From positions 1-64,000 of the IMG/VR virus record IMGVR_UViG_3300042261_002390: DNA of 64,000 nt; one strand, 5' to 3'. This document shows, piece by piece, positions 44,419 to 61,145 of this stretch. Under the pieces are notes generated by a model that was given only the letters and a program-made list of their open reading frames with translations, was not told the origin of the DNA and searched no databases. How positions within the stretch are numbered: position 1 is the stretch's first letter; each line of letters opens with the position of its first letter. The position numbers were made by a program, and so were the translations under genes.

Positions 44419-44910
44419 ATGGCAGGAGAAATGATTAGGGGTATCCCTTTTGAATATGAACCAAAAAGAGTAAATAGATTTTTTGCAGAATTTCCGGATG
44501 AATTAGGCATTGAGGTGTGGAAAGTGCAAAAATTCAAAAGACCTTCAATGAAAATTAATAAAGTCGAAATAGATTTTATGAATGAAAAAAATTATGTTGC
44601 TGGACGTTATACTTGGGATGAAATGACTATCGACTTTTTAGACCCGATAGGTCCTTCTTCATCACAGCAATTAATGGAATGGGTTCGTTTGCACGCAGAA
44701 TCGCTTACTGGTCGTATGGGTTATGCTGCCGGATATAAGAAAAATATCTTATTGAAGGAATTAGACCCAACAGGTGTTGAAGTATCAAAATTTTTCTTGG
44801 AGCAATGTCAGATTGTTTCAATTGATTTTGGAGACAACGATTATTCATCAGATGACTTATCAAAAATAACTTTAACAATACAACCTTGGCGTTGTATCTT
44901 AAACTTATAA
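44419..44910 (+). CDS. Tail tube protein (T4 gp19-like)
   Basis: EPKRVNRF, RPS...AGRYTWDEMTIDFLD, MGYAAGYKKNI, ITLTI; follows the sheath gene. Confidence 0.9.
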   Translation: MAGEMIRGIPFEYEPKRVNRFFAEFPDELGIEVWKVQKFKRPSMKINKVEIDFMNEKNYVAGRYTWDEMTIDFLDPIGPSSSQQLMEWVRLHAESLTGRMGYAAGYKKNILLKELDPTGVEVSKFFLEQCQIVSIDFGDNDYSSDDLSKITLTIQPWRCILNL

Positions 44911-44938
44911 AAAAAGCCACAGCGATGTGGCTTTTTTT
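44909..44938. terminator. Bidirectional intrinsic terminator
   Basis: AAAAAGCCACA-GCGA-TGTGGCTTTTTTT; one mismatch from the terminator at 10198. Confidence 0.85.
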
Positions 44939-45728
44939 ATGCAACTAAATCAAACTTTCGATTTTCAATAATTTTATTTACAAAATAACTCCGGTCTTTA
45001 GCCTCAATAATCTTATAATTATCATTATTGTGTGAAAACCATACTAAATATGATTTACCTAATTTTATTGGGATGTACTTTTCAATAATGTATTTATAAA
45101 TTCCTAATTGCAATGAGTATATTTCTAAATCGCAATCTTCTAAAACAAACAAATCATTCAATAAATGATTTTTCTTATTTTCAAAGCTAAATTCTTTATT
45201 TGTTTTCCAATCCCATATTTGAAATTCTTTCATTTTCACATTATAAAACAGAATATCTAGCATTCCACCAATAAGAGTTTCGGCATCATGCATGACCAAT
45301 TCAGTTCTAATTGGTATTAACTTTCCAAACGTATCATGATAAAAGTTATCGACATGTTTTTTAGTTATTTCATATTCCTTTAGAATGGGGTCAAATCCAA
45401 ACTCTTTATAAATTAATTCTTTTGGGTATTTAAAAATCTTATTTAAAAACAAATTTTCAGCATAATCATGAATAATTGACCCTTTTGTAGTACCCTTTAA
45501 ATTAATAAAATTCCATGCTCTAATGATTTCATATTGCTTCAATCCTAATTGATTGCTTTTATACTGAGACCAGTATTCTTCATCAAAATTTTCTTGATAT
45601 TTATGGATTAAAGTTGTAACTGAAATCAATTCCTTATTATCCACATAATATTTATGTGGTTCATCGAAATATACTATTTTATTAAAAACAGTAAATAATT
45701 CTGGTGGTATTTGTATTTCAATATTCAT
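44937..45728 (-). CDS. PD-(D/E)XK exonuclease
   Basis: SVTTLI, GSIIH, TE, GGMLD, DWKT, YSLQLGIY. Confidence 0.85.
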   Translation of the reverse strand: MNIEIQIPPELFTVFNKIVYFDEPHKYYVDNKELISVTTLIHKYQENFDEEYWSQYKSNQLGLKQYEIIRAWNFINLKGTTKGSIIHDYAENLFLNKIFKYPKELIYKEFGFDPILKEYEITKKHVDNFYHDTFGKLIPIRTELVMHDAETLIGGMLDILFYNVKMKEFQIWDWKTNKEFSFENKKNHLLNDLFVLEDCDLEIYSLQLGIYKYIIEKYIPIKLGKSYLVWFSHNNDNYKIIEAKDRSYFVNKIIENRKFDLVA

Positions 45729-45750
45729 TGCGACAAATATAGTAATAATT

Positions 45751-46641
45751 TTAGTTTATTACTATATTTTCATTAATTATCGCATTAAGGTCTATTTTTT
45801 CCAAATCATTAATAATTGCAGTTTTGTCTGCAGGCAGTCCGGAATATCCGTGTATGTGATTAATTAATGCTCTTCTAAATATCTCAAGCACTTCCATGAT
45901 AATATCACCCCTTCCAATAGGGTGACCTTCTTTAAAAATTTTTTCTCTATCTTTATTTTCAACACGAGCTGCTTTAAATTGTGGATTACCTGAATGTGAA
46001 ATTAAAGCAATTTTATCACTTGTAATGATACTACTGCTTCTATATTTAGAAGTACCAGATATTGGCTCATAAACTAAACTAATTTCTGCCGGATTTACTG
46101 TATTAAGTTTTAATATATTATCATTTTCATGTTTTCCAGCACGAATATGAACCTCATTTATACGCAATATCACATCTGTATTTATTCTTCCTACAATTGC
46201 AATATCGGTTTTTAGTGGGAAAACACCATCAGCATCGGGATATTTTGATGGAGCAGGCTCTGGTACAGTTAAACCATAATTTGTTGTTGAAAGAGCAGTA
46301 TATATTGAATCATAGCCAATTTTTTGTGGCTGTGATATAATACTTCCCTGCCAAAATCTACTTCTTTCAGGATATTTAATATTTTCAATAAAAATTCTAA
46401 CCACTTCACCAATACGTGGATATGCATGAAAAAATTTTGGCATCATTGGGTAACACCAAGGCAATTCGTCATTAGAGGTTTTATTATCAAAACCCTGAAT
46501 TCTTACCTTAATTCTTCCACCATCAGTGGGGTCATCAATCGAAATAACTTCACCGTAGTATATTGTTCTAGTAATTTCAAATGTACTAGCTTCCTTTTTA
46601 AAAGGATTTGATGTTTGTATTACTGGTTTATCGTATCCCAT
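45751..46641 (-). CDS. Baseplate central spike, gp5/VgrG OB-fold protein
   Basis: GEVISIDDPTDGGRIKVRI...LPWCYP...PRIGEVVRIF...FWQGS. Confidence 0.8.
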   Translation of the reverse strand: MGYDKPVIQTSNPFKKEASTFEITRTIYYGEVISIDDPTDGGRIKVRIQGFDNKTSNDELPWCYPMMPKFFHAYPRIGEVVRIFIENIKYPERSRFWQGSIISQPQKIGYDSIYTALSTTNYGLTVPEPAPSKYPDADGVFPLKTDIAIVGRINTDVILRINEVHIRAGKHENDNILKLNTVNPAEISLVYEPISGTSKYRSSSIITSDKIALISHSGNPQFKAARVENKDREKIFKEGHPIGRGDIIMEVLEIFRRALINHIHGYSGLPADKTAIINDLEKIDLNAIINENIVIN

Positions 46642-46847
46642 TATCTTTTCATATATTCTCCAACAAAAATAACATAATTATTTTCAAGACCTTCCATTTC
46701 AATTATTTTTTCATTAATAATGTTTTGAAGTCTATCTATTTCAAAGCTTAAATCAATGATTTCATTTTTTATTTTATCATGACTAAGATTAATATCGTTA
46801 ATCGTCTTTTGTAATTCAATAGCACTATATTTACTTAAATCTTCCAT
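46641..46847 (-). CDS. Small coiled-coil protein
   Basis: 68 aa, heptad pattern, coupled to the gp5-like gene. Confidence 0.5.
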   Translation of the reverse strand: MEDLSKYSAIELQKTINDINLSHDKIKNEIIDLSFEIDRLQNIINEKIIEMEGLENNYVIFVGEYMKR

Positions 46848-46849
46848 AA

Positions 46850-47257
46850 TTATTGTATTACAGCATAACCTTTTGAATAAATAATTGTTGACCCAAAAAC
46901 AGAAACAGGTCCTGTAGGCGATATACCCGCAGCAGTTAATGATATTCCCGGAGGAATTGCTACAGTTATAATTGCTTCTTGTTGTAATGCATTAACAATT
47001 TCTTCAATTCTAATTCTCTCCATAATTTCATCAGGACTTGCACCACCTGATGGCAAAATACCCACTGGTAACCCTGCTTCACTTTTTCTTGATATAATTC
47101 GTGAAGCAATTTTTGTTGGGGATAACCCGGTACGTTGTGGTACTCCAACCAATATAAGTGGTACTGGTACTGGTGGTGGACTTCCAACTGAAGAAAGACT
47201 TAAAATTCTATCAAATCCCTCAATAATTGAGTCAATACTTGTAAAATCAATGCTCAT
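46850..47257 (-). CDS. Hypothetical virion protein (spike-associated candidate)
   Basis: 135 aa, Pro/Gly-rich beta C-terminus; two genes upstream of gp5-OB. Confidence 0.4.
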   Translation of the reverse strand: MSIDFTSIDSIIEGFDRILSLSSVGSPPPVPVPLILVGVPQRTGLSPTKIASRIISRKSEAGLPVGILPSGGASPDEIMERIRIEEIVNALQQEAIITVAIPPGISLTAAGISPTGPVSVFGSTIIYSKGYAVIQ

Positions 47258-47270
47258 TTTTCTATTTAAA

Positions 47271-48602
47271 TTACGTAGTATTAATTGTTTTAATAATTTT
47301 ACTTGAAGTAAGACTTCTAATTAATTTTATAAACTGATTTATCTTTTCTTCAGTAACTTTTTTTATTATGGGGGTTAATAATGATATTAAATAACCAATT
47401 GCTAAATTATAAATAAATTCACTAATGGTTGCAATAATTTTTTTTACTAAACACATGATAAAAATTTTAAATTTTTTCATATCTTGCAATGGTGTGCTAA
47501 TTTCATTATTACCACCCTGAATAAAACTAAAGATAGACAACAAAGCACGTATTTGTGGTGACTGCGTTGATATTTGTGATATTTGTGTTACAAATATGTT
47601 TATTATTTTTTGAAAAAATCCGTCTTTAATTGTTTCATTATTTTCTGCAGTAATGTTTTGGGATGCAGTACTACCACTAGTGCTTTCATTAATAGTATTT
47701 TCAATAGCATTACTAACCACAAAAGGGTCTGTTGAGCCAGATATTGTTGAAACTAAATTATTTAATGAATTAAATGATAATGAAACACCCATATATCCGC
47801 AACCCATATCATAATACCCAATACCCTCTGACATTAGTTTTGATTTTTCCTCCAAGTCATTCAAATCTTTAACTGGAATAATGAAAGAACTATTATCATT
47901 TGCTGCCTGCTCTAACAATTTTTGAACCTTTAAATCTTCAAGTATTTGTTGAGGTGTTCTATTGTTTTTATTTGAAAATGTGCCATATATGCCATCCATT
48001 ATATTTGTAACCAATTCATTCTTATTAATAATTTCGGCATTATCAATATAATCGGTAAAAAATTTACTAATCGATACGTCGCTATCAACTTTTAAATTAA
48101 ATGAATCACTATTATCATCATATTTAATTACCAAACCATTAAATGTTTTTGAGCTACCGGGATTGTTTATTGCACTATATGAAACACTATCAAAATTAGT
48201 TTTAGTTTCATTATAAATTAAACTACCACTATCCGAATTAGGGTCAATTTTAAGTTTTTGTTTTAAATCGATATTTTTTACTGGAATATCAATACCATCA
48301 TTTTTTATGGTGCTTGGAATATCGTCATCAGAATTATTTTGAGTAAATTGCTGTTTTAAAGTATTTTTCACTTGTGTTTCTGATATATCAACTAATTCAG
48401 TAACCATTCCACCCATCAATTGTTTTAAAGCTTCGCTTCCGGCAACAGTTTTTAACACATCTAATAAATAAGGTATTACATCTTTTTTATTATTTATTGA
48501 TGGAAACATTTTTCCCTTTCTCGCTAACTTACCTTGCTGTGCAAATGAAGTATACGAGCTAATTTTAGTGAAAACATCATTTTTTTTATCAGCTAAACTC
48601 AT
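47271..48602 (-). CDS. Hypothetical late protein
   Basis: 443-aa ORF in a late minus-strand operon. Confidence 0.55.
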   Translation of the reverse strand: MSLADKKNDVFTKISSYTSFAQQGKLARKGKMFPSINNKKDVIPYLLDVLKTVAGSEALKQLMGGMVTELVDISETQVKNTLKQQFTQNNSDDDIPSTIKNDGIDIPVKNIDLKQKLKIDPNSDSGSLIYNETKTNFDSVSYSAINNPGSSKTFNGLVIKYDDNSDSFNLKVDSDVSISKFFTDYIDNAEIINKNELVTNIMDGIYGTFSNKNNRTPQQILEDLKVQKLLEQAANDNSSFIIPVKDLNDLEEKSKLMSEGIGYYDMGCGYMGVSLSFNSLNNLVSTISGSTDPFVVSNAIENTINESTSGSTASQNITAENNETIKDGFFQKIINIFVTQISQISTQSPQIRALLSIFSFIQGGNNEISTPLQDMKKFKIFIMCLVKKIIATISEFIYNLAIGYLISLLTPIIKKVTEEKINQFIKLIRSLTSSKIIKTINTT

Positions 48603-48997
48603 TATTTACCCGTTTTTTGTTTATCTCTTTGTTCAATTGCATCATGAACCATATTTAGCAATTCATTTCTTCTGTCAGCAGAAACACTTCCACTACCTTG
48701 ACTTGAGCTTTCACCACCATCACCATCGTTATTTTGTTTATTTACAAAAACAACTTCTTTTAGATATCTTAAAAGCATTATTTTTTGGTCTTGGTTCTTT
48801 GCTTCTGCAGCAATAAGTTTTACAATTTGGTCACCAATCGCAGCAATTTCACCACCTTCTTTTACCTTAAGTTCCCATTTAGTAAATAATCTATTTATTT
48901 TTGCTTTAATATTATGACTTTCATCATATATTTCTTGAAGAAGTTTATTTACACTTTCTTCATTAAATTCTAATCGTTTTCTTTGAGGTCTCGGCAT
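48602..48997 (-). CDS. Hypothetical helical late protein
   Basis: 131 aa; late motif at ~49048-49057 on the minus strand. Confidence 0.55.
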   Translation of the reverse strand: MPRPQRKRLEFNEESVNKLLQEIYDESHNIKAKINRLFTKWELKVKEGGEIAAIGDQIVKLIAAEAKNQDQKIMLLRYLKEVVFVNKQNNDGDGGESSSQGSGSVSADRRNELLNMVHDAIEQRDKQKTGK

Positions 48998-49065
48998 ATT
49001 ATTAATATTTACATTGATTTTATTTTTTCTAAAATAGTTTTAGTACATATAAATACTAATTATTA

Positions 49066-49105
49066 AAAATTAATGGTGACCGATAATTCAATCACCATTA
49101 ATTTT
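49066..49105 (-). terminator. 14-bp hairpin at the end of the sigma-like gene
   Basis: AAAATTAATGGTGA / TCACCATTAATTTT. Confidence 0.6.
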
Positions 49106-49871
49106 AATCATCTAAATAATCATTTTTTTCAATAAAATAAATGTCTTTGAATGGTTTAATAGCTAATCTAATTTCTTTTGTAGTTAAATTAGTTTGTTCT
49201 TTCAAGTATAGTAAAATTTTATTTTTTGCAAATTTATTTGTAACTCTTTTATTGTATTTACCTGATGGACTGTCTTCCATAAACAATAAATGCCAATTTT
49301 TTAGAATATTAATAATTGCATCACCCACTATAATTTCATTCTTTTTCATTAACTTGTCACTATCAATTCTGATTTCAATTTTTTCAACAACTAAGTTAAT
49401 CAATTGCTCTAAATGATGTTGTGTTTCTAGCTCAATTTCATAGCTATAATCACTATTTTCATTTATCTCATCAACAAAATCATCGTAACATAAATTAATT
49501 TTTTTCTCTGAATAACTTTTTCTACTATGGTCACGATAATAATTTCTAATAATGGTCTGGCAATAGCTAAATGCTTTAGTTCTATTGCCAGACTTAGTTA
49601 TTTTATTAGGATTAAATTTAACCATGTGCTCAATCAAATGAGATAATGCATTTGATTCAACTTCATTCATATCGTAATTTCCAATATGAATTGGATATCT
49701 CCTTAATATTGATTGTATCATTTTGCGAAATGGCTCAATCAGAATTTCATTATATATCTGGTTCTTTTCTTCAATTGAATTTGAATTTATATAATCAATA
49801 ACTGCTTGTTCTTCTCTTTCTGCAAAATATGGTGCACCATTGTCACTATTTCTCATTTTACATAAATTCAA
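49104..49871 (-). CDS. Phage sigma-factor-like protein (sigma70 region 2; late-sigma candidate)
   Basis: PYF...YNEIL...MIQSILRRY...HLIEHMVKFNPNK...AFSYCQTIIRNYY resembles region 2.1-2.4 (F(N/D)P, AFSY). Confidence 0.65.
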   Translation of the reverse strand: MNLCKMRNSDNGAPYFAEREEQAVIDYINSNSIEEKNQIYNEILIEPFRKMIQSILRRYPIHIGNYDMNEVESNALSHLIEHMVKFNPNKITKSGNRTKAFSYCQTIIRNYYRDHSRKSYSEKKINLCYDDFVDEINENSDYSYEIELETQHHLEQLINLVVEKIEIRIDSDKLMKKNEIIVGDAIINILKNWHLLFMEDSPSGKYNKRVTNKFAKNKILLYLKEQTNLTTKEIRLAIKPFKDIYFIEKNDYLDD

Positions 49872-49887
49872 AACTAAATGTTATTTA

Positions 49888-50700
49888 TTATACAACTCTC
49901 AATTTAGATAATCGAGTCATATCAATTTGTCTGTCGGTAATAAAATTAGCTTCAGTAGTTGCAGTATCAAACCAAAATTTTCTTTCATTAACAGGCATCG
50001 TTTTCAAATAATTATCAAATAAACTATTCTCTCTTGTTGCCAAATGTTTATATCCAATTTTAGGTATTGTATAAACCTTACAGGCATTATTTAATGCTCT
50101 AAGTAAGAACTCATACATGAATGCTAATTTAATATTTACTTTATATCTACCAAGATTAATAAATTCCGATTTTTTAATAACAGCACCGGATAATTTAAAA
50201 TCTGTATATTGTTTTAATGCATTTGCATTCAAATAACCCATTTCACCATTTTCCCCAACAAATTGTTGTGCCCATACAGTTTCATTTGTTACTTTAATAC
50301 CTTCATTTTTTTCATTAACCTCAATTAACATACTTAAAAATACATCAATATCCGGATATGCATTAATATGTTTTATAACATTGTTGAAATAAGTCGTACT
50401 AAACTCATCATCAAATTCAAGAACAGTAAAATAATCGGTTTCAATGGATTCTACAGCGAGATTTACTTGTGCTTGGTATGAGGTATCACCATTATTTACA
50501 ATTACCGTAGCTCCCGGAACATCAACCAACAATAATTTAATATCATTTTCAATGTTTGGTGGACAAACTACAATAATTTTAGGAAGACTCGTAGTATTTT
50601 CTTGTTTAACTACTGATTCAATTGATTTTTCTAAATAACTTTTAATTAAGTCATTATATTCATGTACTGGAATTATTACTGAAATATTCATATTTATCAA
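49888..50700 (-). CDS. Glycosyltransferase family 2 (GT-A)
   Basis: ISVIIPVH, SYQAQVNLAV, FTVLEFDD (DxD-like). Confidence 0.85.
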   Translation of the reverse strand: MINMNISVIIPVHEYNDLIKSYLEKSIESVVKQENTTSLPKIIVVCPPNIENDIKLLLVDVPGATVIVNNGDTSYQAQVNLAVESIETDYFTVLEFDDEFSTTYFNNVIKHINAYPDIDVFLSMLIEVNEKNEGIKVTNETVWAQQFVGENGEMGYLNANALKQYTDFKLSGAVIKKSEFINLGRYKVNIKLAFMYEFLLRALNNACKVYTIPKIGYKHLATRENSLFDNYLKTMPVNERKFWFDTATTEANFITDRQIDMTRLSKLRVV

Positions 50701-50714
50701 CTATTAACTTTTAA

Positions 50715-51857
50715 TTATTTTTCGCTCTCAACAGGATTTAATACTGTTTCAAGTAATTGTTTTCTGTTGTTAATATATTCTTCATATATATTAATCAATT
50801 GTTTTTCAGACTGTTCTTGTGTATATTTAGCAACAATATTGTCCATAGATTTATATAAATCATCAGTAATGCTATCATCTAAATATTTGATGAGAACTTC
50901 ACCAATTAATACTGGCAAATCATAGTAATTTTCAGTCCAAACACCACCACCATCAACAATCTTAGCTGGAAGACCATTTTCATCACGTTCAACCATATAA
51001 TCTGGCATGATATCGGGTTTTAAACAAATTGGGATTACTCCTGATTTCATACATTCAAGTGGAAATGTACCAAATGATGAAATTCTATCAACCCAAACAG
51101 CAGCAAAATTACCATGTAACCTCTTTGCAAAATCTACACGGCGCATTGGCTGTGGTGGTTTACTTTTAGTAAGCATTGGGTCAAAAGTAACCCAACTATA
51201 TTGAGGATATTTTGCAAAAAATAGTTTAACTAATTTTGAAATTTCATTAGCATTTCTACCAATGACAGAAATAATTGGTTTTTGTGGATTTTTTGATTTT
51301 TCAAAATATTCCGGAATACCAATATTATATGTTTTGATATTGAACTTATTACCATAGATGTTTTCAACCCATTCTTTAAGTGTTGTTGACGTAGTAATAA
51401 CTTCATTAATTCCAAATGATGACCAATCAGTTCCCGGGATTAATGAATTAATCATATAATCGACAGATTGTAATAAACCAATTCGCACACATGGTAAATT
51501 TTTAGTTTGTTCCATTACGTTAGAATAAACTTCAGGAATAATCATAAAATCTTCAGGACCTACCATTAATTTAGGGTCAGACATTGACATATGCTTATGA
51601 TTAGTCAATTCTTTTTCAATCCATGTCGGGATAACATAATCACCCTTTTCAACTAAAATTGTTACATCATATCCCATGTTTTTAACTACTGTAGCATGAA
51701 AATAAATTTCATATACACTAGCCACAGGACTTTGAGATTCAGGCACACAAAATAAAAATTTAGATTCTTTGTTAGAAATCTTATTTAATGAAACTTTTAT
51801 TTTTTCAATTTTTTCGTTTTCAGCTTGTTGAGCTGCTAAATTCATATCTTCGCTCAT
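50715..51857 (-). CDS. GT-B fold glycosyltransferase (GT4-like)
   Basis: IYFHATVVKNMGYDV, MIIPEV, SSFGTFPLECMKSGVIPI (E-G-F-G-x-P-x-E-A-M-like motif). Confidence 0.7.
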   Translation of the reverse strand: MSEDMNLAAQQAENEKIEKIKVSLNKISNKESKFLFCVPESQSPVASVYEIYFHATVVKNMGYDVTILVEKGDYVIPTWIEKELTNHKHMSMSDPKLMVGPEDFMIIPEVYSNVMEQTKNLPCVRIGLLQSVDYMINSLIPGTDWSSFGINEVITTSTTLKEWVENIYGNKFNIKTYNIGIPEYFEKSKNPQKPIISVIGRNANEISKLVKLFFAKYPQYSWVTFDPMLTKSKPPQPMRRVDFAKRLHGNFAAVWVDRISSFGTFPLECMKSGVIPICLKPDIMPDYMVERDENGLPAKIVDGGGVWTENYYDLPVLIGEVLIKYLDDSITDDLYKSMDNIVAKYTQEQSEKQLINIYEEYINNRKQLLETVLNPVESEK

Positions 51858-51862
51858 TTTTT

Positions 51863-52603
51863 TTATTGTTTTTTATATTTAATTATTTTTTCAAAATCCG
51901 GGTTATTGGTTAATTCAGCAATTTGTAATATTTCCAATACACCTTCTTTAATGTTTTCATTGTAAGGTCTTTTAACCTTAATTAATTTTTTACCCCAAGG
52001 AGTACCTAATTTTAGTATTTCAGGGTCGGTAGTAATTAGAATATCCGAATCGTTCCACATATCAATAGCATTATCAACAAAACGAATATTTTTAAATCTA
52101 CTAGTCATCTTACTTAAAAAGAACAACGTAGATGGAATGCTAAGAAAATTTTCAACAGAATAAAGTGTAAATTCCACATTATTACCATATTTTTCATAAA
52201 ATTCTTTTACGTGTAAATCCATACCACGATACATTATAGGTGCTGATGCATGTATTTCATACACATAGTCTTGATACATAAATCGATTATATACCTCTTT
52301 AGCCGTTAGTTTAATTTCTTTAGGTGCTTTAAATAAAAAAGCATCTGCTGGTGCTTCACCAAATCTTTCGTCAACCTGATATTCAAGAGGGTTTATGTTT
52401 TCAGGCATATCTTCAGGTTCTTTAAGTTCTTTTTCTGTTTCAACAGTATCTTTGAACTTATAGTGCTTGAATAAATCATAAACATATGGTTGTTCAGGTA
52501 TCCCTTCTTCACCAAATTCCTGAGCATAAAATCTATCAAATTGTAGCCATTTTGCCCTAAAAATTTCATTAATATCGATACCAACTTTAATTTTTTTACT
52601 CAT
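51863..52603 (-). CDS. HAD-family 5'(3')-deoxyribonucleotidase-like protein
   Basis: KVGIDINEIF (DxD variant), STLFFL, DILITTDP, RPYN. Confidence 0.55.
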   Translation of the reverse strand: MSKKIKVGIDINEIFRAKWLQFDRFYAQEFGEEGIPEQPYVYDLFKHYKFKDTVETEKELKEPEDMPENINPLEYQVDERFGEAPADAFLFKAPKEIKLTAKEVYNRFMYQDYVYEIHASAPIMYRGMDLHVKEFYEKYGNNVEFTLYSVENFLSIPSTLFFLSKMTSRFKNIRFVDNAIDMWNDSDILITTDPEILKLGTPWGKKLIKVKRPYNENIKEGVLEILQIAELTNNPDFEKIIKYKKQ

Positions 52604-52892
52604 TGTTTTTGTTTTTTAATAGCTCCGCTTGATATTGGAGTTCTTCGTTTAATTTTTTTATCAATTCTTCATGTTGTTCAATTAATTTTTCATTGGTAAT
52701 ATATATTGGGTTAATACACTCAATTCTGGTATCTTGTTTTTGTACTGGAATTACAATAATTTCAGCTTCAATAGATTTTGGAGATATCTTTTCAGTTATT
52801 CTCTTAACAAAAGCTGGAATATCTTCCGAACGAATCCCGGCAACGCCAACATATATTACTAATATTTGATTAATCTTTTTTTTCATTTTCAA
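52596..52892 (-). CDS. Hypothetical protein
   Basis: 98-aa ORF, coupled to neighbours. Confidence 0.55.
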   Translation of the reverse strand: MKMKKKINQILVIYVGVAGIRSEDIPAFVKRITEKISPKSIEAEIIVIPVQKQDTRIECINPIYITNEKLIEQHEELIKKLNEELQYQAELLKNKNNE

Positions 52893-53709
52893 CTAAGAGT
52901 TGTTTATTATCTTTATTTAACTTATTTGTTTTAGTTTCACCTGTTAATGCGATATATTCTTTATACTTTTCAATAATTATATTAATTATTGGGTTTCTAA
53001 CACTATCATCAGTATTATCCATTTCAATAACACCAATATCATCAACATTTTTATACATTTTAAGTAGTGGCTGTAATGAACTTTCCGATTTATTTCTTAA
53101 GTCAATTTGGTCTATATCACCAAGTAATATTAATTTACTATTACTACCAATACGAGTTAAAAGTGTGAGTGCATTATCTAACGATATATTTTGCATTTCG
53201 TCAGCGATAATAATACAATCATCTAAAGTAGTTCCTTTAATAAAAGCAAGTGGAAATGGTCTTAATATTTCTTTTTCAAGAAGTATTTCAATATTTGCTT
53301 CAGGAATTATTTTTTCCATATTAATATAGAAACTCCACATATATGGGTCAAATTTTTCCTTCACACCACCTTTTAAAAAACCAAGTTCTTCATCTTTTAA
53401 TGTTCTTACTGATTTAACTAAATATAATCTCTTATATCTATTAGTATTTTTTCGCAATAAACTAAGTGCATATGCTAAAGCAACAAAAGTTTTACCAGTA
53501 CCAGCACGACCAGAACAAATGGTAATTTCTTTATTTTTTATTGAATTAATTAATTTTTTCTGACTTTCATTTTTTGCTATAATTTTTAAGTCATTAGGAA
53601 CTAATTTTGCAATTTCGTATTTAATTAAATTAACCTGTTCAGTGCTATTAACCTTAACATTAGTTAATTCATTATAATCATTTTCTTCTTTAACTCTATC
53701 TCTAGGCAT
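52870..53709 (-). CDS. phoH: PhoH-family ATPase
   Basis: AKNESQ, SGRAGTGKT, GFLKG, IKGTTL, ADEMQN, LTRIG, GDIDQID, VRNPI. Confidence 0.95.
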   Translation of the reverse strand: MPRDRVKEENDYNELTNVKVNSTEQVNLIKYEIAKLVPNDLKIIAKNESQKKLINSIKNKEITICSGRAGTGKTFVALAYALSLLRKNTNRYKRLYLVKSVRTLKDEELGFLKGGVKEKFDPYMWSFYINMEKIIPEANIEILLEKEILRPFPLAFIKGTTLDDCIIIADEMQNISLDNALTLLTRIGSNSKLILLGDIDQIDLRNKSESSLQPLLKMYKNVDDIGVIEMDNTDDSVRNPIINIIIEKYKEYIALTGETKTNKLNKDNKQLLVENEKKD

Positions 53710-53849: not shown

Positions 53850-54755
53850 ATGAGCGATAATTTAACACCACAAAAAGAAAGTATCGGCGATGCATTAAAA
53901 AAATATAGTGAAAGTCGAGGTATTGTAAATGATGAACAAGTTGTAACTAATGTTAATATACCTAAAGCATCATATAATCAACAAGATTATGAACAATTAA
54001 TGTCTAAAGAAACTGACCCTGATTTAATTACTTCATATGAAATAGTTAAACTACCATCAAATGGTTTATTTTACTCTAACAGAATATCTGAAGTAAAAAT
54101 TGAATATATGACTTCTAAAGACGAAGATTTGTTAACAACACCTTCATTAATTGAAAATGGTACTGTATTGGATGTTTTATTAAAAAGAAAAATAAAGACC
54201 CCGGGAATTAATGTTGATACATTACTTGAAGGTGATAGAAATGCATTACTTTTATTCTTAAGAACTTCAAGTTATGGTTCAGATTATACAGTTCAAGTAA
54301 CTGACCCACGCTCTGGTATACCTTTTACAACAAAAGTAGATTTACTAAAATTGAAATATAAAACAATCAATGAATTGCCAGATGAAAATGGATACTTTAG
54401 TCTTGAGATTCCTATGAGAAAAAAGAATGTAAAAGTGAAATTATTATCATCCGGGGAAGATAGAAACATAAAAAAAAGAGCAGATGCAATTCAAGAAGCA
54501 TATAATGAAGAATTCAATCAATATAATACACTTAAATTAAAAGCAACTATAATATCAATTAATGGTAAAACAGATAGGTCATATATTGATAAATTTGTTG
54601 ATGCAATGCCAGCACTTGATGCATATGCTATTCGTAGAAAAATACTTGATGTGAGTCCGGACGTTGATATGTCATATGAATTTATGGCAAAAGACGGATA
54701 TACTTTTAATGCTAATCTAACAGTAGGAATTGATTTTTTTTTCCCCGGGATTTAG
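53850..54755 (+). CDS. Baseplate hub/tail assembly chaperone (T4 gp26-like)
   Basis: VKLPSNG..Y, YMTSKDEDLL, GDRNALL.FLR..SYG..Y, ends IDFFFP; upstream of the tape measure gene. Confidence 0.8.
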   Translation: MSDNLTPQKESIGDALKKYSESRGIVNDEQVVTNVNIPKASYNQQDYEQLMSKETDPDLITSYEIVKLPSNGLFYSNRISEVKIEYMTSKDEDLLTTPSLIENGTVLDVLLKRKIKTPGINVDTLLEGDRNALLLFLRTSSYGSDYTVQVTDPRSGIPFTTKVDLLKLKYKTINELPDENGYFSLEIPMRKKNVKVKLLSSGEDRNIKKRADAIQEAYNEEFNQYNTLKLKATIISINGKTDRSYIDKFVDAMPALDAYAIRRKILDVSPDVDMSYEFMAKDGYTFNANLTVGIDFFFPGI

Positions 54756-54943
54756 CAGGTGAGTATAAAAAAATGGTTAATGAAGAAATATATATTTTAA
54801 CAAAACATGCTAAATTCCAAGCAGATTATATAGAAAATCTTCCAATTTATCGTAGAAGACATTTTCTATATTTATTACAGAAGGAAAATGAGGAAATTGA
54901 AAAAGCTCAAGAAGCTGCAAAATCAAAAAGACCGAGAAAATAA
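54734..54943 (+). CDS. gp51-like chaperone in the -1 frame (not in track); probable programmed frameshift product
   Basis: -1 frame open from the T9 run (54734) to TAA 54941-43: ...EEIYILTKHAKFQADYIENLPIYRRRHFLYLLQKENEEIEK; internal ATG at 54773. Confidence 0.7.
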   Translation, partial: FFFPRDLAGEYKKMVNEEIYILTKHAKFQADYIENLPIYRRRHFLYLLQKENEEIEKAQEAAKSKRPRK

Positions 54944-54985
54944 AAATCCCGGTCTTTTGTATTTATAATAAACAAATTTTAATAC

Positions 54986-57523
54986 ATGGCAACTAACGAC
55001 TTAAATACACTAAAAGCACTGATTGCTGAACAAGAAGCACTAAATCAATTATATCTTAATGCAACGGATATACAACAAAAAAAAGATGCAATTGAAAAGC
55101 AAATTTTAAACGATAAAATGCTTCAACGTGAGCAAGAAAGGCTTATCGGTGAAATGTTGGCTGGTAATCTTAATCTAAGTAAAGAAGACCTTAAAACGCT
55201 TAATGGACAGGTAGATAGACATCGTAAGATAAATGAATACTTGAAGGATGAAAATAAAAATCGTAAAACTGGTGTTGATTTAGTTAAAAAGTTAAATACT
55301 GGTTTATCTAAGACTTGGGAGTATTTGATGCAATCTGATAAAGTAATCAGAGAAACAATCCGTAATTTAGGCATGTCAGGTGCTAAAGCCGATGCAATGA
55401 GAAAATCATTTGAATTATCGGCAATGAATGTTGCTCGTATGGGTGGTAGTTTAGCAACAATTCAATCAGTTATGGAAGGTTATGCTGAAGAAACTGGTAG
55501 AGCACGTGCATTAACTGCTTCAATGGTTGAAGACATTACATCCATTGGACTTGGAACTGGATTAGGAATTGAGCAAGCAACCAAATTAGGCGCACAGTTT
55601 GAATTAATGGGTTTTGACGCTAGAAAAACAGCACAATATGTTCAAGGTATTGTTGATACTTCTGAAAGAATGGGTGTTAATACGACCAAAGTATTAAAAA
55701 ACTTAAACGATAACTTTAAAAAAGTCAATACATATAGCTTTAAATCAGGAAGTAAAGGAATTGCTGAAATGGCGATGAATGCTGAAAAATTTAGAGTTGA
55801 TATGAAAGATGCATTATCTGCTGCCGATGCTGCTAAAAGCCTTGAAAAAGCAATTGATTTGGCAGCAAATTTACAGGTAATGGGTGGTGAATTTGCAAAA
55901 ACAGACCCGTTAGAATGGATGTATCTTGCACGTAATGAACCAGATAAACTAACAAAAAAATTATCTGAAATGACTAGGGGTTTAGTCACGTTTAAAAAAA
56001 ATAGTGAAGGTACATTTGAAAAATTTATTAGTCCTGCTGATAGACAAAGGCTAGAAAGTGTTGCACAATCATTAGGTATTACTGCCGAACAAATGACAGA
56101 AATAACAGAAAGACGTGCAGAACTAGACTTAATGGCTAGACAATTAGCTGGAACTGGATTAACTGACAGAGAAAAAGAATTAGTTGAAGGTGCTGCAATA
56201 TTTAATGCTAAATCAGGTAAATTTGAAGTCCAATTAGCAGGTAGAATGCAAGATATATCGACATTAACAGCAAATCAAGCAAAATCATTTGTTAAAGAAC
56301 AAGCATCGTTAAAAGAAAGAGCAATGGCTGCTCAAACATTTGATGAAGCACTTAAAGCCACAATCGAGGAATTTAAAACAGTATTGCTTCCAATGCTCAA
56401 AGGTATTAATGATATGCTTAAGTGGGTTAGACCTATTGCGGTGAGTTTCAACAACTTCATTAATAGCATTACTAAAACAGATTTAGGTGGAACATTATTA
56501 AAAGCTGCTGGTTGGATGATGGCTGCAGGTTTTTTGATTAATAAAGCAGTAATAGCTTTTAGTTTAAGCGGTAAAGGACTTGGCGAAAGGTTGATTGATA
56601 AAATATCAGGTAATGGTACAAAAACTACAGGATTAGGTGGGTATATAAACCAAAGAAGTGCAGCTAGAAAAGCTAGATTAGCTACTGGTGGTGGAATTAG
56701 TAATCCAAATGCGGGAAAAGGATTAATGCGTGGTGGTACTGGTATAGGTGCTGCTGCACTTGGTATAGGTGCTGGTATAGGTGCTGCTGCTGCAGGTATT
56801 AGTTTATTAGCAGATTCTATGTCAAAATTAACACCACAACAAGCAGAAACATTAAAAAGTATTGTAAGTTCTATTGGGTGGTTTGTAGTTGGTGGCATAG
56901 CTGCTGCAGTTGGAATTAGTTTAATTGGTAAAAGTGCTGAATTATCTGCTGCTGGTTTAGGTATGTTATCATTAACTGCAATAAGTATTGGTGCTGCAAT
57001 GGTTGGCGTTGGGTTTGGTATTAAATTAGCTGCTGATGGTTTAGCTAATTTAGTCATTTCAAGCAAAGGTGCTGGCACAGATATGTTAAAAGTTGCCGGA
57101 GGTATTGCAGCAATTGGGGCATCTTTAGCTATGTTTAGTTTCGGTGGTATTGGTTTAGGAGTTTTTGCTGCAACAATGGCAACTATTGCATTAACAACAC
57201 CAGCCTTAGTTAAAGCAGGAACAGCATTTGAGCAAATGGGTAATGCAGTACTAAATTTAAAAGGTACAAAAGAAGACTTTGTTGCAATTCAAAATGCAGT
57301 TGAATCAATATCTAAAGCGAATAATAAAGGTGGAGGTATGTTAGCTGAATTAGCAACATTATTAAAATCTCCATTAAAGGTAGAATTTGTTGACAAAAAT
57401 GTTGCAGTTGTAAGTGATATAACATTAAACATTGATGGTCAGAAGTTTATGCAAAAAGTTTATAAAGCACCTGCTGCTGTTCAAAAAAATGTTGAGGCAA
57501 AAACACAAGGTTTACCGGGCTAA
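54986..57523 (+). CDS. Tape measure protein
   Basis: 845 aa, Ala/Gly-rich helical protein with hydrophobic stretches; follows the chaperone pair; precedes baseplate genes. Confidence 0.85.
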   Translation: MATNDLNTLKALIAEQEALNQLYLNATDIQQKKDAIEKQILNDKMLQREQERLIGEMLAGNLNLSKEDLKTLNGQVDRHRKINEYLKDENKNRKTGVDLVKKLNTGLSKTWEYLMQSDKVIRETIRNLGMSGAKADAMRKSFELSAMNVARMGGSLATIQSVMEGYAEETGRARALTASMVEDITSIGLGTGLGIEQATKLGAQFELMGFDARKTAQYVQGIVDTSERMGVNTTKVLKNLNDNFKKVNTYSFKSGSKGIAEMAMNAEKFRVDMKDALSAADAAKSLEKAIDLAANLQVMGGEFAKTDPLEWMYLARNEPDKLTKKLSEMTRGLVTFKKNSEGTFEKFISPADRQRLESVAQSLGITAEQMTEITERRAELDLMARQLAGTGLTDREKELVEGAAIFNAKSGKFEVQLAGRMQDISTLTANQAKSFVKEQASLKERAMAAQTFDEALKATIEEFKTVLLPMLKGINDMLKWVRPIAVSFNNFINSITKTDLGGTLLKAAGWMMAAGFLINKAVIAFSLSGKGLGERLIDKISGNGTKTTGLGGYINQRSAARKARLATGGGISNPNAGKGLMRGGTGIGAAALGIGAGIGAAAAGISLLADSMSKLTPQQAETLKSIVSSIGWFVVGGIAAAVGISLIGKSAELSAAGLGMLSLTAISIGAAMVGVGFGIKLAADGLANLVISSKGAGTDMLKVAGGIAAIGASLAMFSFGGIGLGVFAATMATIALTTPALVKAGTAFEQMGNAVLNLKGTKEDFVAIQNAVESISKANNKGGGMLAELATLLKSPLKVEFVDKNVAVVSDITLNIDGQKFMQKVYKAPAAVQKNVEAKTQGLPG

Positions 57524-57941
57524 AAGTGTTAAAAAATGTTAAAAAATGGCATATTTGAGAAAATCACTAGAATATGTCATTTTTTTCTTGTAACTTTGAC
57601 GCAGTTTTGCTTCGCTCACGCAAGCTTCCGCTACACAACACAGCTTTTCTCGCTTCTTCGAAACCAGAAACAAACTTACAATGTTTGTGATTTGATTTAA
57701 AAATCGAACCAAAACTTGAAATAAAAGGATAGCTATGCTCATATTGTAACCAATATTCAAAAATAAAATCAAAAGTAATAAATTTATTTGAAAAATTGAA
57801 TAATTATAATTAAATCCCAATTATTGTTTTAGTATATATTGTTGATATCACTAGCTCCGGGTTTGGAGTAGACTCCGGCAATGTAAAATTAGATATTATA
57901 AATTTAATATGCAAGTATTTATTTTAAAATATCACATTTTA

Positions 57942-60900
57942 ATGGCACTTCAAGATAATAGAACAAATTCAAGATTATTAACAAGCACTAGCGTTTTAAG
58001 GGAAAAGCTAAATTCTCGTAATTTATATACACCAAATGTTGAATATCCTCTTAGTAATGATAATAATGTTAATAAAACGGTTAGTGCAATAAATACCATT
58101 ATTGCTGGATTAACACCGTTCAAGTCGTATAATCTTGAAAACACTGTTTATGGTAGAATAATAAATAATGAAACTCCATTGGCAACAATTGGTTTGGCTA
58201 TGTTGGGTAAACAAATGGCATTAAATTCAATGTCAAGTATTGCTCAAGAGAATTTTCCAAAAATAAATGTGGCAAATCTTTTTGATAAAGATAGTTCAAC
58301 TAAATTATTCACCAAACAGATTGATTATAGTGTAACCATTAAAACTGGTACTACTGCATTTAGTAGATTTTTAAGTTCTGCTGTATATTGGTATCCTCAG
58401 AAAAATAATCCATTTAAGCCAACATCAATTAACTCTGATTATATTCAACAGACAGGTATTGGACAATTAAAAAGTTTATATTCTTTAGTTAATAAAAATA
58501 TATATAAACCTGACGACACGGATGAGATTAATAGTACTTTTTATTCATATGCCGATGTTGCTGGTGTTACTATTTTGCCTAGAATAAGTATTGTGGCTAA
58601 TAGAAAATATTATGATGCCATAAAATATGCCCCATACAGTCCATTTTATAGTATCTCTGTTTCAGCTATTGTTATTGCTGATAGTAATATGATTAATTCT
58701 GTTAGTACTGAATATAATACAGAATATGCACCAAATAATTCATATGTTGAATCGTATTTTGGAAAAACTAAATTAAATAATGACGCTAAATTAAATTCAA
58801 TTTCCAATACTTGGATTGATGACGAAACTCCATTTAAAAATGATGGTCTTACTAATAAAATTGTTTGGGGTAGAGATGGTATTATTGATGAAGTAAATAA
58901 AAGTTCATCTGATTTAAGAGGTTTAGATGAAGATACATATTCTAATTTTCAAATACAGGATTTAACTGAAAAATTCAATGTAAGAGGCGGGTTATTAGAA
59001 TATACCAGAAATTTAATAAATGCTACTGAAGGTAAAATTGGTGATTTAACTAGAAAAGCGTTTCTTAATAATAATAATGAACCAATCGGTTTTAATGGTT
59101 CTGCATTATGGAATGCATCAGCCAATTCATTACCTTCATTTGCTGGTAAAACAGGTGTACGTCAACATTCTGTATTAGACCCTTATAATCGATTTGCTAA
59201 AGCAATTAGATTTGATGGCAATAGTGTATATAATGGTAATCCGGATTCAGTTATTTATAATTCAGTAATGCCTAGAATTCACCCAACTATTAATGACAAT
59301 GGTAATGGTATAAATAACAAAAACCTAATGTTTAGTATTGAAAATCTAGCCATTAACGTAATTAGTAAAGAGGGATATGGTATTATTGACGATGAATATG
59401 GCTCACAAATTCCATTAGAAGAAGTAGGTCCTTTTAATGGTCGTATTATGTGGTTTCCACCATATGCTATTGACATTAATGAAACAGCAACAGCTAAATT
59501 TGAACCAACTGTAATGGTGGGTAGAAATGAACCGATGTATAATTACATGAATTCTGAAAGAAGTGCAACATTAAATTTTAGTTTGTTAATTGACTATCCA
59601 CCACAAGTAAAAAATTTAACATCGCAAAAGGAAATTGCAGAATTTTTTGCATATGGTACGATTTTTAATGATGAAAAAAAATATGCAAGTAATCTTGAGA
59701 GTAAAATGACTTCTCTTCAGAATCAAATTGATAATATTCTTAATAGAAGAGATATTAAGTTTAATGAAATTAAAATTCCAGATGCAATTTCAATATATTT
59801 TACAAATGATTCACCTAAAGTTGGTGAAGAAAGTACTATTATTGATAAGATGTATGGCAATTATGCGTATGAAATTACATCACAAGTATTATCAAAAGTT
59901 GATAATAATAGTTATGGATATAATAAACCTGTATATTTTATAAGCGGGTTAACTTCTTATGATTATAGTGGTAAAACTATGTATCAATTCACATCAACAC
60001 CTTCATTTTCACAATATACTATGAGTGGTTTAACAGACCAATTTGGCATTGTTGAATTAAATAAAATGTTAAAAGATACTTATGAAAACGAAGAAAATCG
60101 AAAATATTATGATATTGCAATACATGGTGGTGCAACTAAATTATATACTGAAGCTAATCCGAACGATATTCAGGCTGAAATTGATTATAATAAAAAATTA
60201 GGACAGCGTAGAGCAGATGCCGCTAAAATATTAATTACTAAAAGATTGGAAGCAATGTTTGGCAAACCAATTAATCAATTAGGAATTAATATTAGTAGTG
60301 TCTCAAGTGTTGGAAGTAGTCAAGCAAGTCCAAATAATGCAACAGCAGCAGCAATATCTACATCGGAAGCAAAACAAGAAAGATATGCAAGAATAAGAAT
60401 CGTTAGAAATTCAACACCATATCAGCCAAAGCTTGATAAATTGACATCTGATGAACAAGCAACTGTTGATAAATTAAAAAGTGAAATTGAGGCAATTAAA
60501 ACTCAGTTAAGTCTTCTTCAAAATAATTCATCAACAATGATGAAAGAAAGAAGAGAAGATAAAACTGCAATTTTAGATGGTTTTAAATCAATAAAAGATA
60601 ATTATTTATATCCAGCATTTCATTCACAAACCCCGGAAGATTTTCATAAGCGTTTAACCTTCTTGCAACAATGTACTAGACAGGGTTCGGCTAAAAGATA
60701 TGATGTAAAACCTGATGCAAATGGTATTTTAAGAGCTAGAAATTCAGTGTTTGGTCGTCAACCAATATGTATTTTAAGAATTGGTGATTTTTATTATACT
60801 AAAGTGATTATTGAAACTATTAATTTTGATTATAGTGATACTACTTGGGATATGAATCCCGAAGGCTTTGGTATGCAGCCAATGATGGCTAAAATTACTT

Positions 60901-61145
60901 TAACTATGAAAATATTGGGTGGTCAATCATTGAAAGGACCTGTCGATGCATTGCAAAATGCAGTTTCGTTTAATTATTATGCTAATTCAAGTTATACTGA
61001 TAAGGGCATGTATTTATTACCTTCAGCAATGGCTGCTTTAAATGATAGTTATCGTAACGGAATTGATACTGCTAATATGTCAAGTGTCGATAATATTAAT
61101 ATAACAGGTAAATTTATTACGAGAAATTTAAATAATACTGAATAA
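57942..61145 (+). CDS. Tail-tube initiator/baseplate protein (gp48/gp54-like) with inserted OmpA-like domain
   Basis: MWFPPY...GRNEPMYNYMNSERSATLNF and QPICILRIGD...VIIETINFDY...PMMAKITLTM tube-fold blocks flank IYFTND...YNKKLGQRRA...RYARIRI; start MALQD at 57942 follows the late motif (57914). Confidence 0.65.
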   Translation: MALQDNRTNSRLLTSTSVLREKLNSRNLYTPNVEYPLSNDNNVNKTVSAINTIIAGLTPFKSYNLENTVYGRIINNETPLATIGLAMLGKQMALNSMSSIAQENFPKINVANLFDKDSSTKLFTKQIDYSVTIKTGTTAFSRFLSSAVYWYPQKNNPFKPTSINSDYIQQTGIGQLKSLYSLVNKNIYKPDDTDEINSTFYSYADVAGVTILPRISIVANRKYYDAIKYAPYSPFYSISVSAIVIADSNMINSVSTEYNTEYAPNNSYVESYFGKTKLNNDAKLNSISNTWIDDETPFKNDGLTNKIVWGRDGIIDEVNKSSSDLRGLDEDTYSNFQIQDLTEKFNVRGGLLEYTRNLINATEGKIGDLTRKAFLNNNNEPIGFNGSALWNASANSLPSFAGKTGVRQHSVLDPYNRFAKAIRFDGNSVYNGNPDSVIYNSVMPRIHPTINDNGNGINNKNLMFSIENLAINVISKEGYGIIDDEYGSQIPLEEVGPFNGRIMWFPPYAIDINETATAKFEPTVMVGRNEPMYNYMNSERSATLNFSLLIDYPPQVKNLTSQKEIAEFFAYGTIFNDEKKYASNLESKMTSLQNQIDNILNRRDIKFNEIKIPDAISIYFTNDSPKVGEESTIIDKMYGNYAYEITSQVLSKVDNNSYGYNKPVYFISGLTSYDYSGKTMYQFTSTPSFSQYTMSGLTDQFGIVELNKMLKDTYENEENRKYYDIAIHGGATKLYTEANPNDIQAEIDYNKKLGQRRADAAKILITKRLEAMFGKPINQLGINISSVSSVGSSQASPNNATAAAISTSEAKQERYARIRIVRNSTPYQPKLDKLTSDEQATVDKLKSEIEAIKTQLSLLQNNSSTMMKERREDKTAILDGFKSIKDNYLYPAFHSQTPEDFHKRLTFLQQCTRQGSAKRYDVKPDANGILRARNSVFGRQPICILRIGDFYYTKVIIETINFDYSDTTWDMNPEGFGMQPMMAKITLTMKILGGQSLKGPVDALQNAVSFNYYANSSYTDKGMYLLPSAMAALNDSYRNGIDTANMSSVDNINITGKFITRNLNNTE

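Follow-up and report, generated by a model that had tools for sequence, protein, structure and literature searches.

In bacteriophage lambda, the tail assembly chaperones gpG and gpGT are produced from two overlapping ORFs located directly before the tape measure gene, the short form being made in excess and the rare long form carrying an extra domain that binds the tail tube subunit. This arrangement is conserved as a frameshift in the tail chaperone genes of long-tailed phages (Levin 1993; Xu, Hendrix and Duda 2004, 2013, 2014; cited via PMC5009743). The lambda slip site is G_GGA_AAG, and no strong stimulatory RNA structure is known for it. T4-type phages are not usually listed among the examples of this rule. 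In T4, gene 26 (208 aa) and gene 51 (249 aa) are divergently transcribed, paralogous neighbours without a frameshift, both belonging to Pfam family PF12322, and a review of T4 tail assembly still lists gp51 as an essential hub-assembly protein of unknown function (PMC3004832). T4-like cyanophages, e.g., Prochlorococcus phage P-HM1, carry a gp26 gene and a short "gp51" annotated as a separate gene. Homopolymers can also be used for transcriptional slippage, and runs of nine A or T give efficient slippage by bacterial RNA polymerase, which is used productively in Thermus dnaX (run of nine) and in Shigella type III secretion genes, mxiE among them (PMC5009743). Here, we analyzed a gp26-like gene within a window of 64,000 nucleotides, i.e., the first 64 kb of the 246-kb freshwater virus record IMGVR_UViG_3300042261_002390. 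A preliminary description, made from the sequence alone, had proposed that a T run at the end of this gene causes a programmed -1 frameshift into a gp51-like ORF, comparable to lambda G/GT.

Results

Anatomy of the locus

The sequence features given in the preliminary description were all confirmed. The gp26-like ORF (53850–54755, plus strand, as are all features given below with coordinates) encodes 301 aa and ends GAT TTT TTT TTC CCC GGG ATT TAG, with TAG at 54753–54755. The T9 run is located at 54734–54742 and, together with the following C (54743), holds two overlapping X_XXY_YYZ heptamers, T_TTT_TTT (54734–54740) and T_TTT_TTC (54737–54743), both frames reading F-F-F-P across it. The -1 frame has a TGA at 54731–54733, followed by 69 sense codons (FFFPRDLAGEYKKMVNEE...RPRK) and a TAA at 54941–54943 (extension, 54734–54943). 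Ordinary translation gives the short form, ending ...VGIDFFFPGI, whereas a -1 shift would give a long form of 364 aa, i.e., residues 1–295 of the short form followed by FFFPRDLAGEYKK...RPRK. An internal ATG at 54773–54775, preceded by AGGTGAG at 54757–54763, is the start of the 56-aa ORF that gene callers report. A contig from an independent lake sample covers 54693–54864 without a single difference or gap, so the run length is not an assembly error.

The next gene (54986–57523, 845 aa) starts 43 nt after the extension and probably encodes the tape measure protein. It occupies the same position as the annotated tape measure genes of relatives, shows weak collinear similarity to the tape measure protein of Flavobacterium phage immuto (E 0.002–0.003), and has a helical N-terminal and a Gly/Ala-rich hydrophobic C-terminal part, while no Pfam or PHROG hit was obtained. 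The tail sheath gene (41076–43886; phrog_23, E 6e-64) and the tail tube gene (44419–44910; phrog_4542, E 5e-26; 40% identity to the gp19-like tube protein of Microcystis phage Mel-JY01) are not adjacent but lie 9 kb upstream, with a block of minus-strand genes in between. Pfam profiles PF06841 and PF04984 did not find the tube and sheath genes, which were identified by a relative's protein and by PHROGs. A hairpin (54926–54967; AAAAGACCG ... CGGTCTTTT) overlaps the end of the extension and is followed by the conserved GTATTTATA, possibly representing a terminator followed by a promoter in front of the tape measure gene. Its arms change in a compensatory way among relatives (AGGCCGAG/CTCGGCCT, AGACCAAG/CTTGGTC, and GGAACTAA/TTAGTTCC), although this was read by eye and RNAalifold gave no consensus structure on that alignment.

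Family assignment and predicted folds

The 301-aa protein matches PF12322 (T4_baseplate, T4 gp26/gp51) over residues 62–257 with 35.6 bits (E 1e-8; gathering cut-off 24.5), and phrog_150 "baseplate hub". A search of the whole genome gave the same result and revealed only one PF12322 gene. The 69-codon peptide matches nothing directly, and no tail-chaperone family appears among the Pfam or PHROG hits of either ORF, so that the pair is not a sequence member of the named tail-chaperone families. A blastn search of the region against phage genomes found no match.

An AlphaFold2 model of the 301-aa protein is confident (pLDDT 88.7) and matches 68 entries for T4-like baseplate hub subunit or assembly proteins among predicted viral structures (BFVD) at E 0.001 or below. 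Foldseek against the PDB found nothing significant. In a structural comparison with 48,161 PDB chains, the three best matches were 3fgx (Z 6.8, model residues 58–151), 3klu/YqbN (Z 5.8, residues 178–270), and 2ob9/HK97 gp13 (Z 5.7), the three solved tail assembly chaperones (PMC9603447); these Z-scores are modest (in the middling range of the method), and what carries weight is that the top three all belong to this class. The body of about 300 aa appears to hold two chaperone-like domains (residues 58–151 and 178–270 of the model). The extension on its own is predicted as a confident three-helix domain (pLDDT 86.5). A predicted complex of tube protein and extension scored 0.00, which counts neither for nor against binding.

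Conservation in close relatives

Conservation of the slip site in relatives had been named beforehand as a test of the frameshift. IMG/VR holds 12 further distinct sequences at 55–69% amino acid identity, and all 13 distinct sequences of the clade keep GATTTTTTTTTCCC exactly (GA-T9-CCC), have the frame-0 stop exactly four codons after the run, and have an open -1 frame encoding the same peptide (67–84 codons in the relatives). Of 32 two-fold-degenerate columns with an invariant amino acid in the gene, only seven have an invariant codon, and four of those are the consecutive D-F-F-F codons of the run. Ten of the 13 sequences have ATG at the position of ATG 54773. In the remaining three, here called L007, L008, and L009, the codon is TTA and the first ATG/GTG/TTG of the -1 frame is codon 54–57 of 72, so the conserved peptide there has no start of its own; the locus L018 has ATA at this position. 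Between the run and the ATG, the -1 frame is conserved as protein (P-x-x-L-A-G-E-Y-K-K) with variation mainly at third positions, the variable sites by codon position being 4/1/7 there and 20/9/35 further on. The AGGTGAG is not a ribosome-binding site, as only 1 of 47 ORFs of 150 aa or more in this 30% GC window has any SD-like pentamer upstream; those bases encode the conserved Ala-Gly-Glu of the -1 frame. The internal ATG, considered an alternative independent start in the preliminary description, is therefore probably just an internal Met codon of the long form.

No conserved stem-loop or pseudoknot follows the run. RNAalifold only paired the U-run with the Lys-codon A-run, and the single-sequence fold had a z of -1.8.

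A +1 arrangement in distant relatives

A profile search found several hundred more family members, of which 80 loci were retrieved and scanned with an HMM of the extension in all three forward frames. In 68 distinct loci at 33–40% identity, the homologous peptide (FFGLxxEYxxxLHEEIFxLxYxGxGGFxxxxVYNMPxxLRRFY) lies in the +1 frame and overlaps the end of the gp26-like ORF. Of these 68 sites, 64 have exactly T7 (N TTT TTT TGG CC or TTT TTT TAC CC), and the base before the run is never T, Asp always being GAC and Asn always AAC. A few sites lack a homopolymer (TTC TTT TGG, TTT CTT TGG, and the Firmicute phages). Most of these +1 ORFs have no start codon before the conserved Met of "NMP". The same +1 layout is present, unannotated, in six cultured phages, i.e., Flavobacterium phage immuto, Microcystis phage Mel-JY01, Streptococcus phage GXN1, Bacillus phages SP-15 and HSE3, and Listeria phage LIS04, and in the huge uncultured phage LR756508. 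In the six cultured phages the gene order is sheath, tube, gp26-like, tape measure (the LR756508 record carries no annotation), and in 64 metagenomic loci the tube gene is directly upstream. PA5oct and Xoo-sp13 showed no clear extension in any frame.

The extension corresponds to the tail of T4 gp51

T4 gp51 matches PF12322 over residues 1–201 and has about 48 further residues, whereas T4 gp26 ends ...GLKEFFELL, three residues after the same G-L-x-E-F-F motif at which the window's gene shifts, like the short form. The T4 proteins carry Cys pairs that the window's protein lacks, and direct sequence similarity between T4 and the window is low (no tblastn hit, hmmsearch not significant). Direct comparisons of the extension with T4 gp51 were likewise negative: hmmsearch scores were near zero, hhalign of the extension alone against the gp51 family was not better than shuffled controls, and no PHROG hit was obtained at E 0.1 or below. 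The gp51 profile phrog_634 ("baseplate hub assembly catalyst") was not found in the genome and was hit by only 1 of 80 relatives (E 0.0016), and precomputed tables, in which the gp51 tail is PF28602, showed no Pfam domain on more than 300 homologues. The one exception is the +1-fused Mel-JY01 product, which aligns with phrog_150 through the junction to profile position 274, a part of the profile that T4 gp51 reaches and T4 gp26 does not.

The lead came from a structure search with the extension model, which listed, among otherwise insignificant matches, the 53-aa "Gp51" of P-HM1. In P-HM1, gp26 ends TCT GAT TTT TTC GTA TAG, gp51 lies in the -1 frame, which is open from the TGA just before the run, and the genome has only one PF12322 gene. 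The slip site sits at the same F-F codons (GAT TTT TTC) as in the window, yet the run is T6 rather than T9 and the frame-0 stop comes two codons after it rather than four. Across 53 distinct T4-like cyanophage loci at 41–100% identity, gp51 is always in the -1 frame and the site is always NNT TTT TT(C/A), a canonical heptamer, while about 25 loci have no start codon before the conserved NM(I/M)PWER. Profile–profile comparison by hhalign then linked the window-type extensions to cyanophage gp51 (probability 96.4%, E 1.1e-9), and cyanophage gp51 to positions 200–252, the tail, of T4-type gp51 (probability 97.1%, E 5.4e-11), whereas reversed controls gave E 0.24–0.27. BLASTP of P-HM1 gp51 against T4 gp51 residues 211–249 gave 40% identity. 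The downstream ORF is thus gp51-like in a precise sense, corresponding to the C-terminal tail of T4 gp51, and T4 gp51 as a whole, a gp26 paralogue plus this tail, has the architecture of the frameshift product.

Discussion

The interpretation given in the preliminary description, i.e., a -1 programmed frameshift linking a gp26-like to a gp51-like ORF in the manner of lambda G/GT, is supported by our analysis. In layout, the locus agrees with the functional definition of this class: the -1 ORF is open from a conserved slippery run, the start codon of the extension is absent in L007–L009 and in many distant relatives, and the gene lies directly before the probable tape measure gene, in 64 relatives and in cultured phages also directly after the tube gene, which in the window, however, lies 9 kb upstream. 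Compared to lambda, the extension is only 66 aa long and the site is a T9 homopolymer instead of G_GGA_AAG. We regard as established by the analysis the anatomy, its conservation, the homologies, and a modest similarity of the predicted model to the chaperone fold, whereas it is inferred that the long form is made, at what ratio, by which slipping machine, and with which binding partners.

We propose that the gp26-like gene is the tail assembly chaperone gene of this 246-kb myovirus and gives two proteins from one start. In this view, most ribosomes would stop at TAG 54753 and give the 301-aa form, while a minority would slip back one base on the U-run, with tRNA-Phe re-pairing on U_UUU_UUC or U_UUU_UUU, and read on in the -1 frame to 54940, giving the 364-aa form with an extra 66-residue, predicted three-helix domain. 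By analogy with lambda gpG/gpGT, both forms would coat the tape measure protein through the shared body, and the extra domain of the rare long form would recruit the tail tube protein (the expected partner by analogy with lambda gpV) or the hub to start tube polymerisation, neither form staying in the virion. Recoding of some kind is, in our opinion, highly likely, although it is inferred from conservation and not observed. For the slipping machine we favour the ribosome with moderate confidence. The run contains perfect -1 heptamers, and the homologous cyanophage site is a bare T_TTT_TT(C/A) heptamer, too short for efficient polymerase slippage. The base before the run follows the rule expected for tRNA re-pairing, being always T in the 53 -1 cyanophage sites and never T in the 68 +1 sites, and some +1 sites have no run at all, so RNA polymerase slippage cannot explain them.

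RNA polymerase slippage nevertheless remains a real, if less likely, alternative or contributor, as the sequence cannot tell the two machines apart. Here, the polymerase would add one U to some transcripts, and the U10 transcripts would be translated normally into the same long form. T9 is exactly the length at which bacterial RNA polymerase slips efficiently (PMC5009743), and the run is exactly T9 in 13 of 13 sequences, including the T of the GAT codon, which the last heptamer does not need. Exact run lengths are also kept in the +1 clade, and no downstream stimulator for ribosomes was found. On the other hand, homologous sites work with T6 or without a homopolymer, and the C after the run and both F codons are also explained by the need to read F-F-F-P in both frames.

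Two independent genes, with the 56-aa ORF translated on its own from ATG 54773 and the overlap being incidental, are very unlikely. This reading could draw on the ATG in 10 of 13 sequences, on the 55–60-aa proteins that gene callers report for more than 300 clusters, and on the separate annotation of P-HM1 gp51. However, L007–L009 have no other start before codon 54, residues upstream of the ATG (FFFPxxLAGEYKK) are conserved with third-position variation, SD motifs are not used in this genome, most +1-clade and about half of the cyanophage loci lack a start codon, and in T4 the tail is covalently part of gp51. Stop-codon readthrough or another genetic code was rejected, as the extension is in another frame and relatives use TAA, TAG, and TGA as the frame-0 stop. 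An artefact or decay (a homopolymer length error, a length-variable run, or a recently broken single gene, a T10 run being sufficient to fuse the frames) is very unlikely. Homopolymers are error-prone and mutable, but the same T9 occurs in the independent contig and in 12 other distinct metagenomic relatives, none with T8 or T10, the frame-0 stop lies at a fixed distance in all of them, and other clades show the same two-frame layout with different sites.

Programmed frameshifting in tail chaperone genes is a known rule for long-tailed phages; what seems to be new is its presence in the gp26/gp51 family and the reading that follows for T4. A full-text literature search on gp26 or gp51 in connection with frameshifting, tail assembly chaperones, or cyanophages found no paper describing it, although the library searched was limited and prior description elsewhere cannot be excluded, and none of six annotated records inspected has a joined CDS at this site. 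The window's gene bridges the two: inferred from its sequence, the rule operates in the gp26/gp51 family. We consider it more likely than not that the T4 "hub assembly" proteins are the tail assembly chaperone of the T4 superfamily, gp26 being the short (G-like) and gp51 the long (GT-like) form. Across large myoviruses, this one chaperone would then be expressed in four interchangeable ways, including -1 slippage (T9 here, T6 in T4-like cyanophages), +1 slippage (T7, or CUU_U/CCC_N types), and gene duplication with an in-frame tail (T4). That would explain why gp51 is essential yet absent from virions and acts "catalytically", and would mean that the gp51 genes annotated in T4-like cyanophages are frameshift extensions of gp26. 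The finding gives a concrete, testable role for gp26 and gp51, would correct the annotation ("baseplate hub" plus a small hypothetical protein or "gp51") in hundreds of phage and metagenome records, and offers a natural series (T6, T7, T9, no run; -1 and +1) for studying how slip sites evolve at a fixed position in a protein.

Genomic Context of the Probable Chaperone Gene

The last codons and the stop of the extension are overlapped by a hairpin (AAAAGACCG...CGGTCTTTT; window 54926-54967), which is followed by an invariant GTATTTATA about 20-40 nt before the start of the probable tape measure gene. The hairpin arms show compensatory changes among relatives, and the element may be a terminator plus a phage promoter, separating chaperone and tape measure transcription. 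Directly after the tape measure gene, we found a 1078-aa ORF (57909-61145) without any Pfam or PHROG match, which by position may encode a hub or distal tail protein. On the other side, about 9 kb of minus-strand ORFs (44937-53709) sit between the tube gene and the chaperone gene, whereas these two genes are adjacent in more distant relatives.

Across the whole window, GC content is 30%, and SD-like motifs occur upstream of only 1 of 47 long ORFs. This suggests a host that does not use Shine-Dalgarno initiation, possibly Bacteroidota-like. The record is labelled 'provirus' in IMG/VR; however, relatives are contigs of 324-371 kb, so it looks like a free jumbo phage. One homologue of the small ORF (protein P0147), located on a 363-kb contig, is deposited at NCBI as 'Candidatus Paceibacterota bacterium', and this is probably a jumbo-phage contig binned into a bacterial MAG.

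The Extension in Other Phages

The homologous extension is also carried by cultured phages, in the +1 frame after their 'baseplate hub' gene and with no frameshift annotated, which applies to Bacillus phage SP-15 (locus L097), Listeria phage LIS04 (L095), Bacillus phage HSE3 (L096), Streptococcus phage GXN1 (L003), and the loci L001 and L002. The sites of the Firmicute phages have no T-run (for example GCC CGA TTC, CCC CGA TTT, and CCC AAG TTT), suggesting +1 slippage at CC(C)_N before a rare codon. One relative (L049:3636-4091) has TTC TTT TTT CCC and a -1 frame extension with a roughly 20-residue insertion and an ATG of its own 17 nt after the frame-0 stop, and may represent a lineage in which the extension became a separate gene. 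In T4-like cyanophages (loci L105-L184 and L104:2860-3058), the gene annotated as 'gp51, baseplate hub assembly catalyst' lies in the -1 frame behind a conserved T_TTT_TT(C/A). As it has no start codon in about half of the loci, its annotation as a separate gene in these phages is probably wrong.
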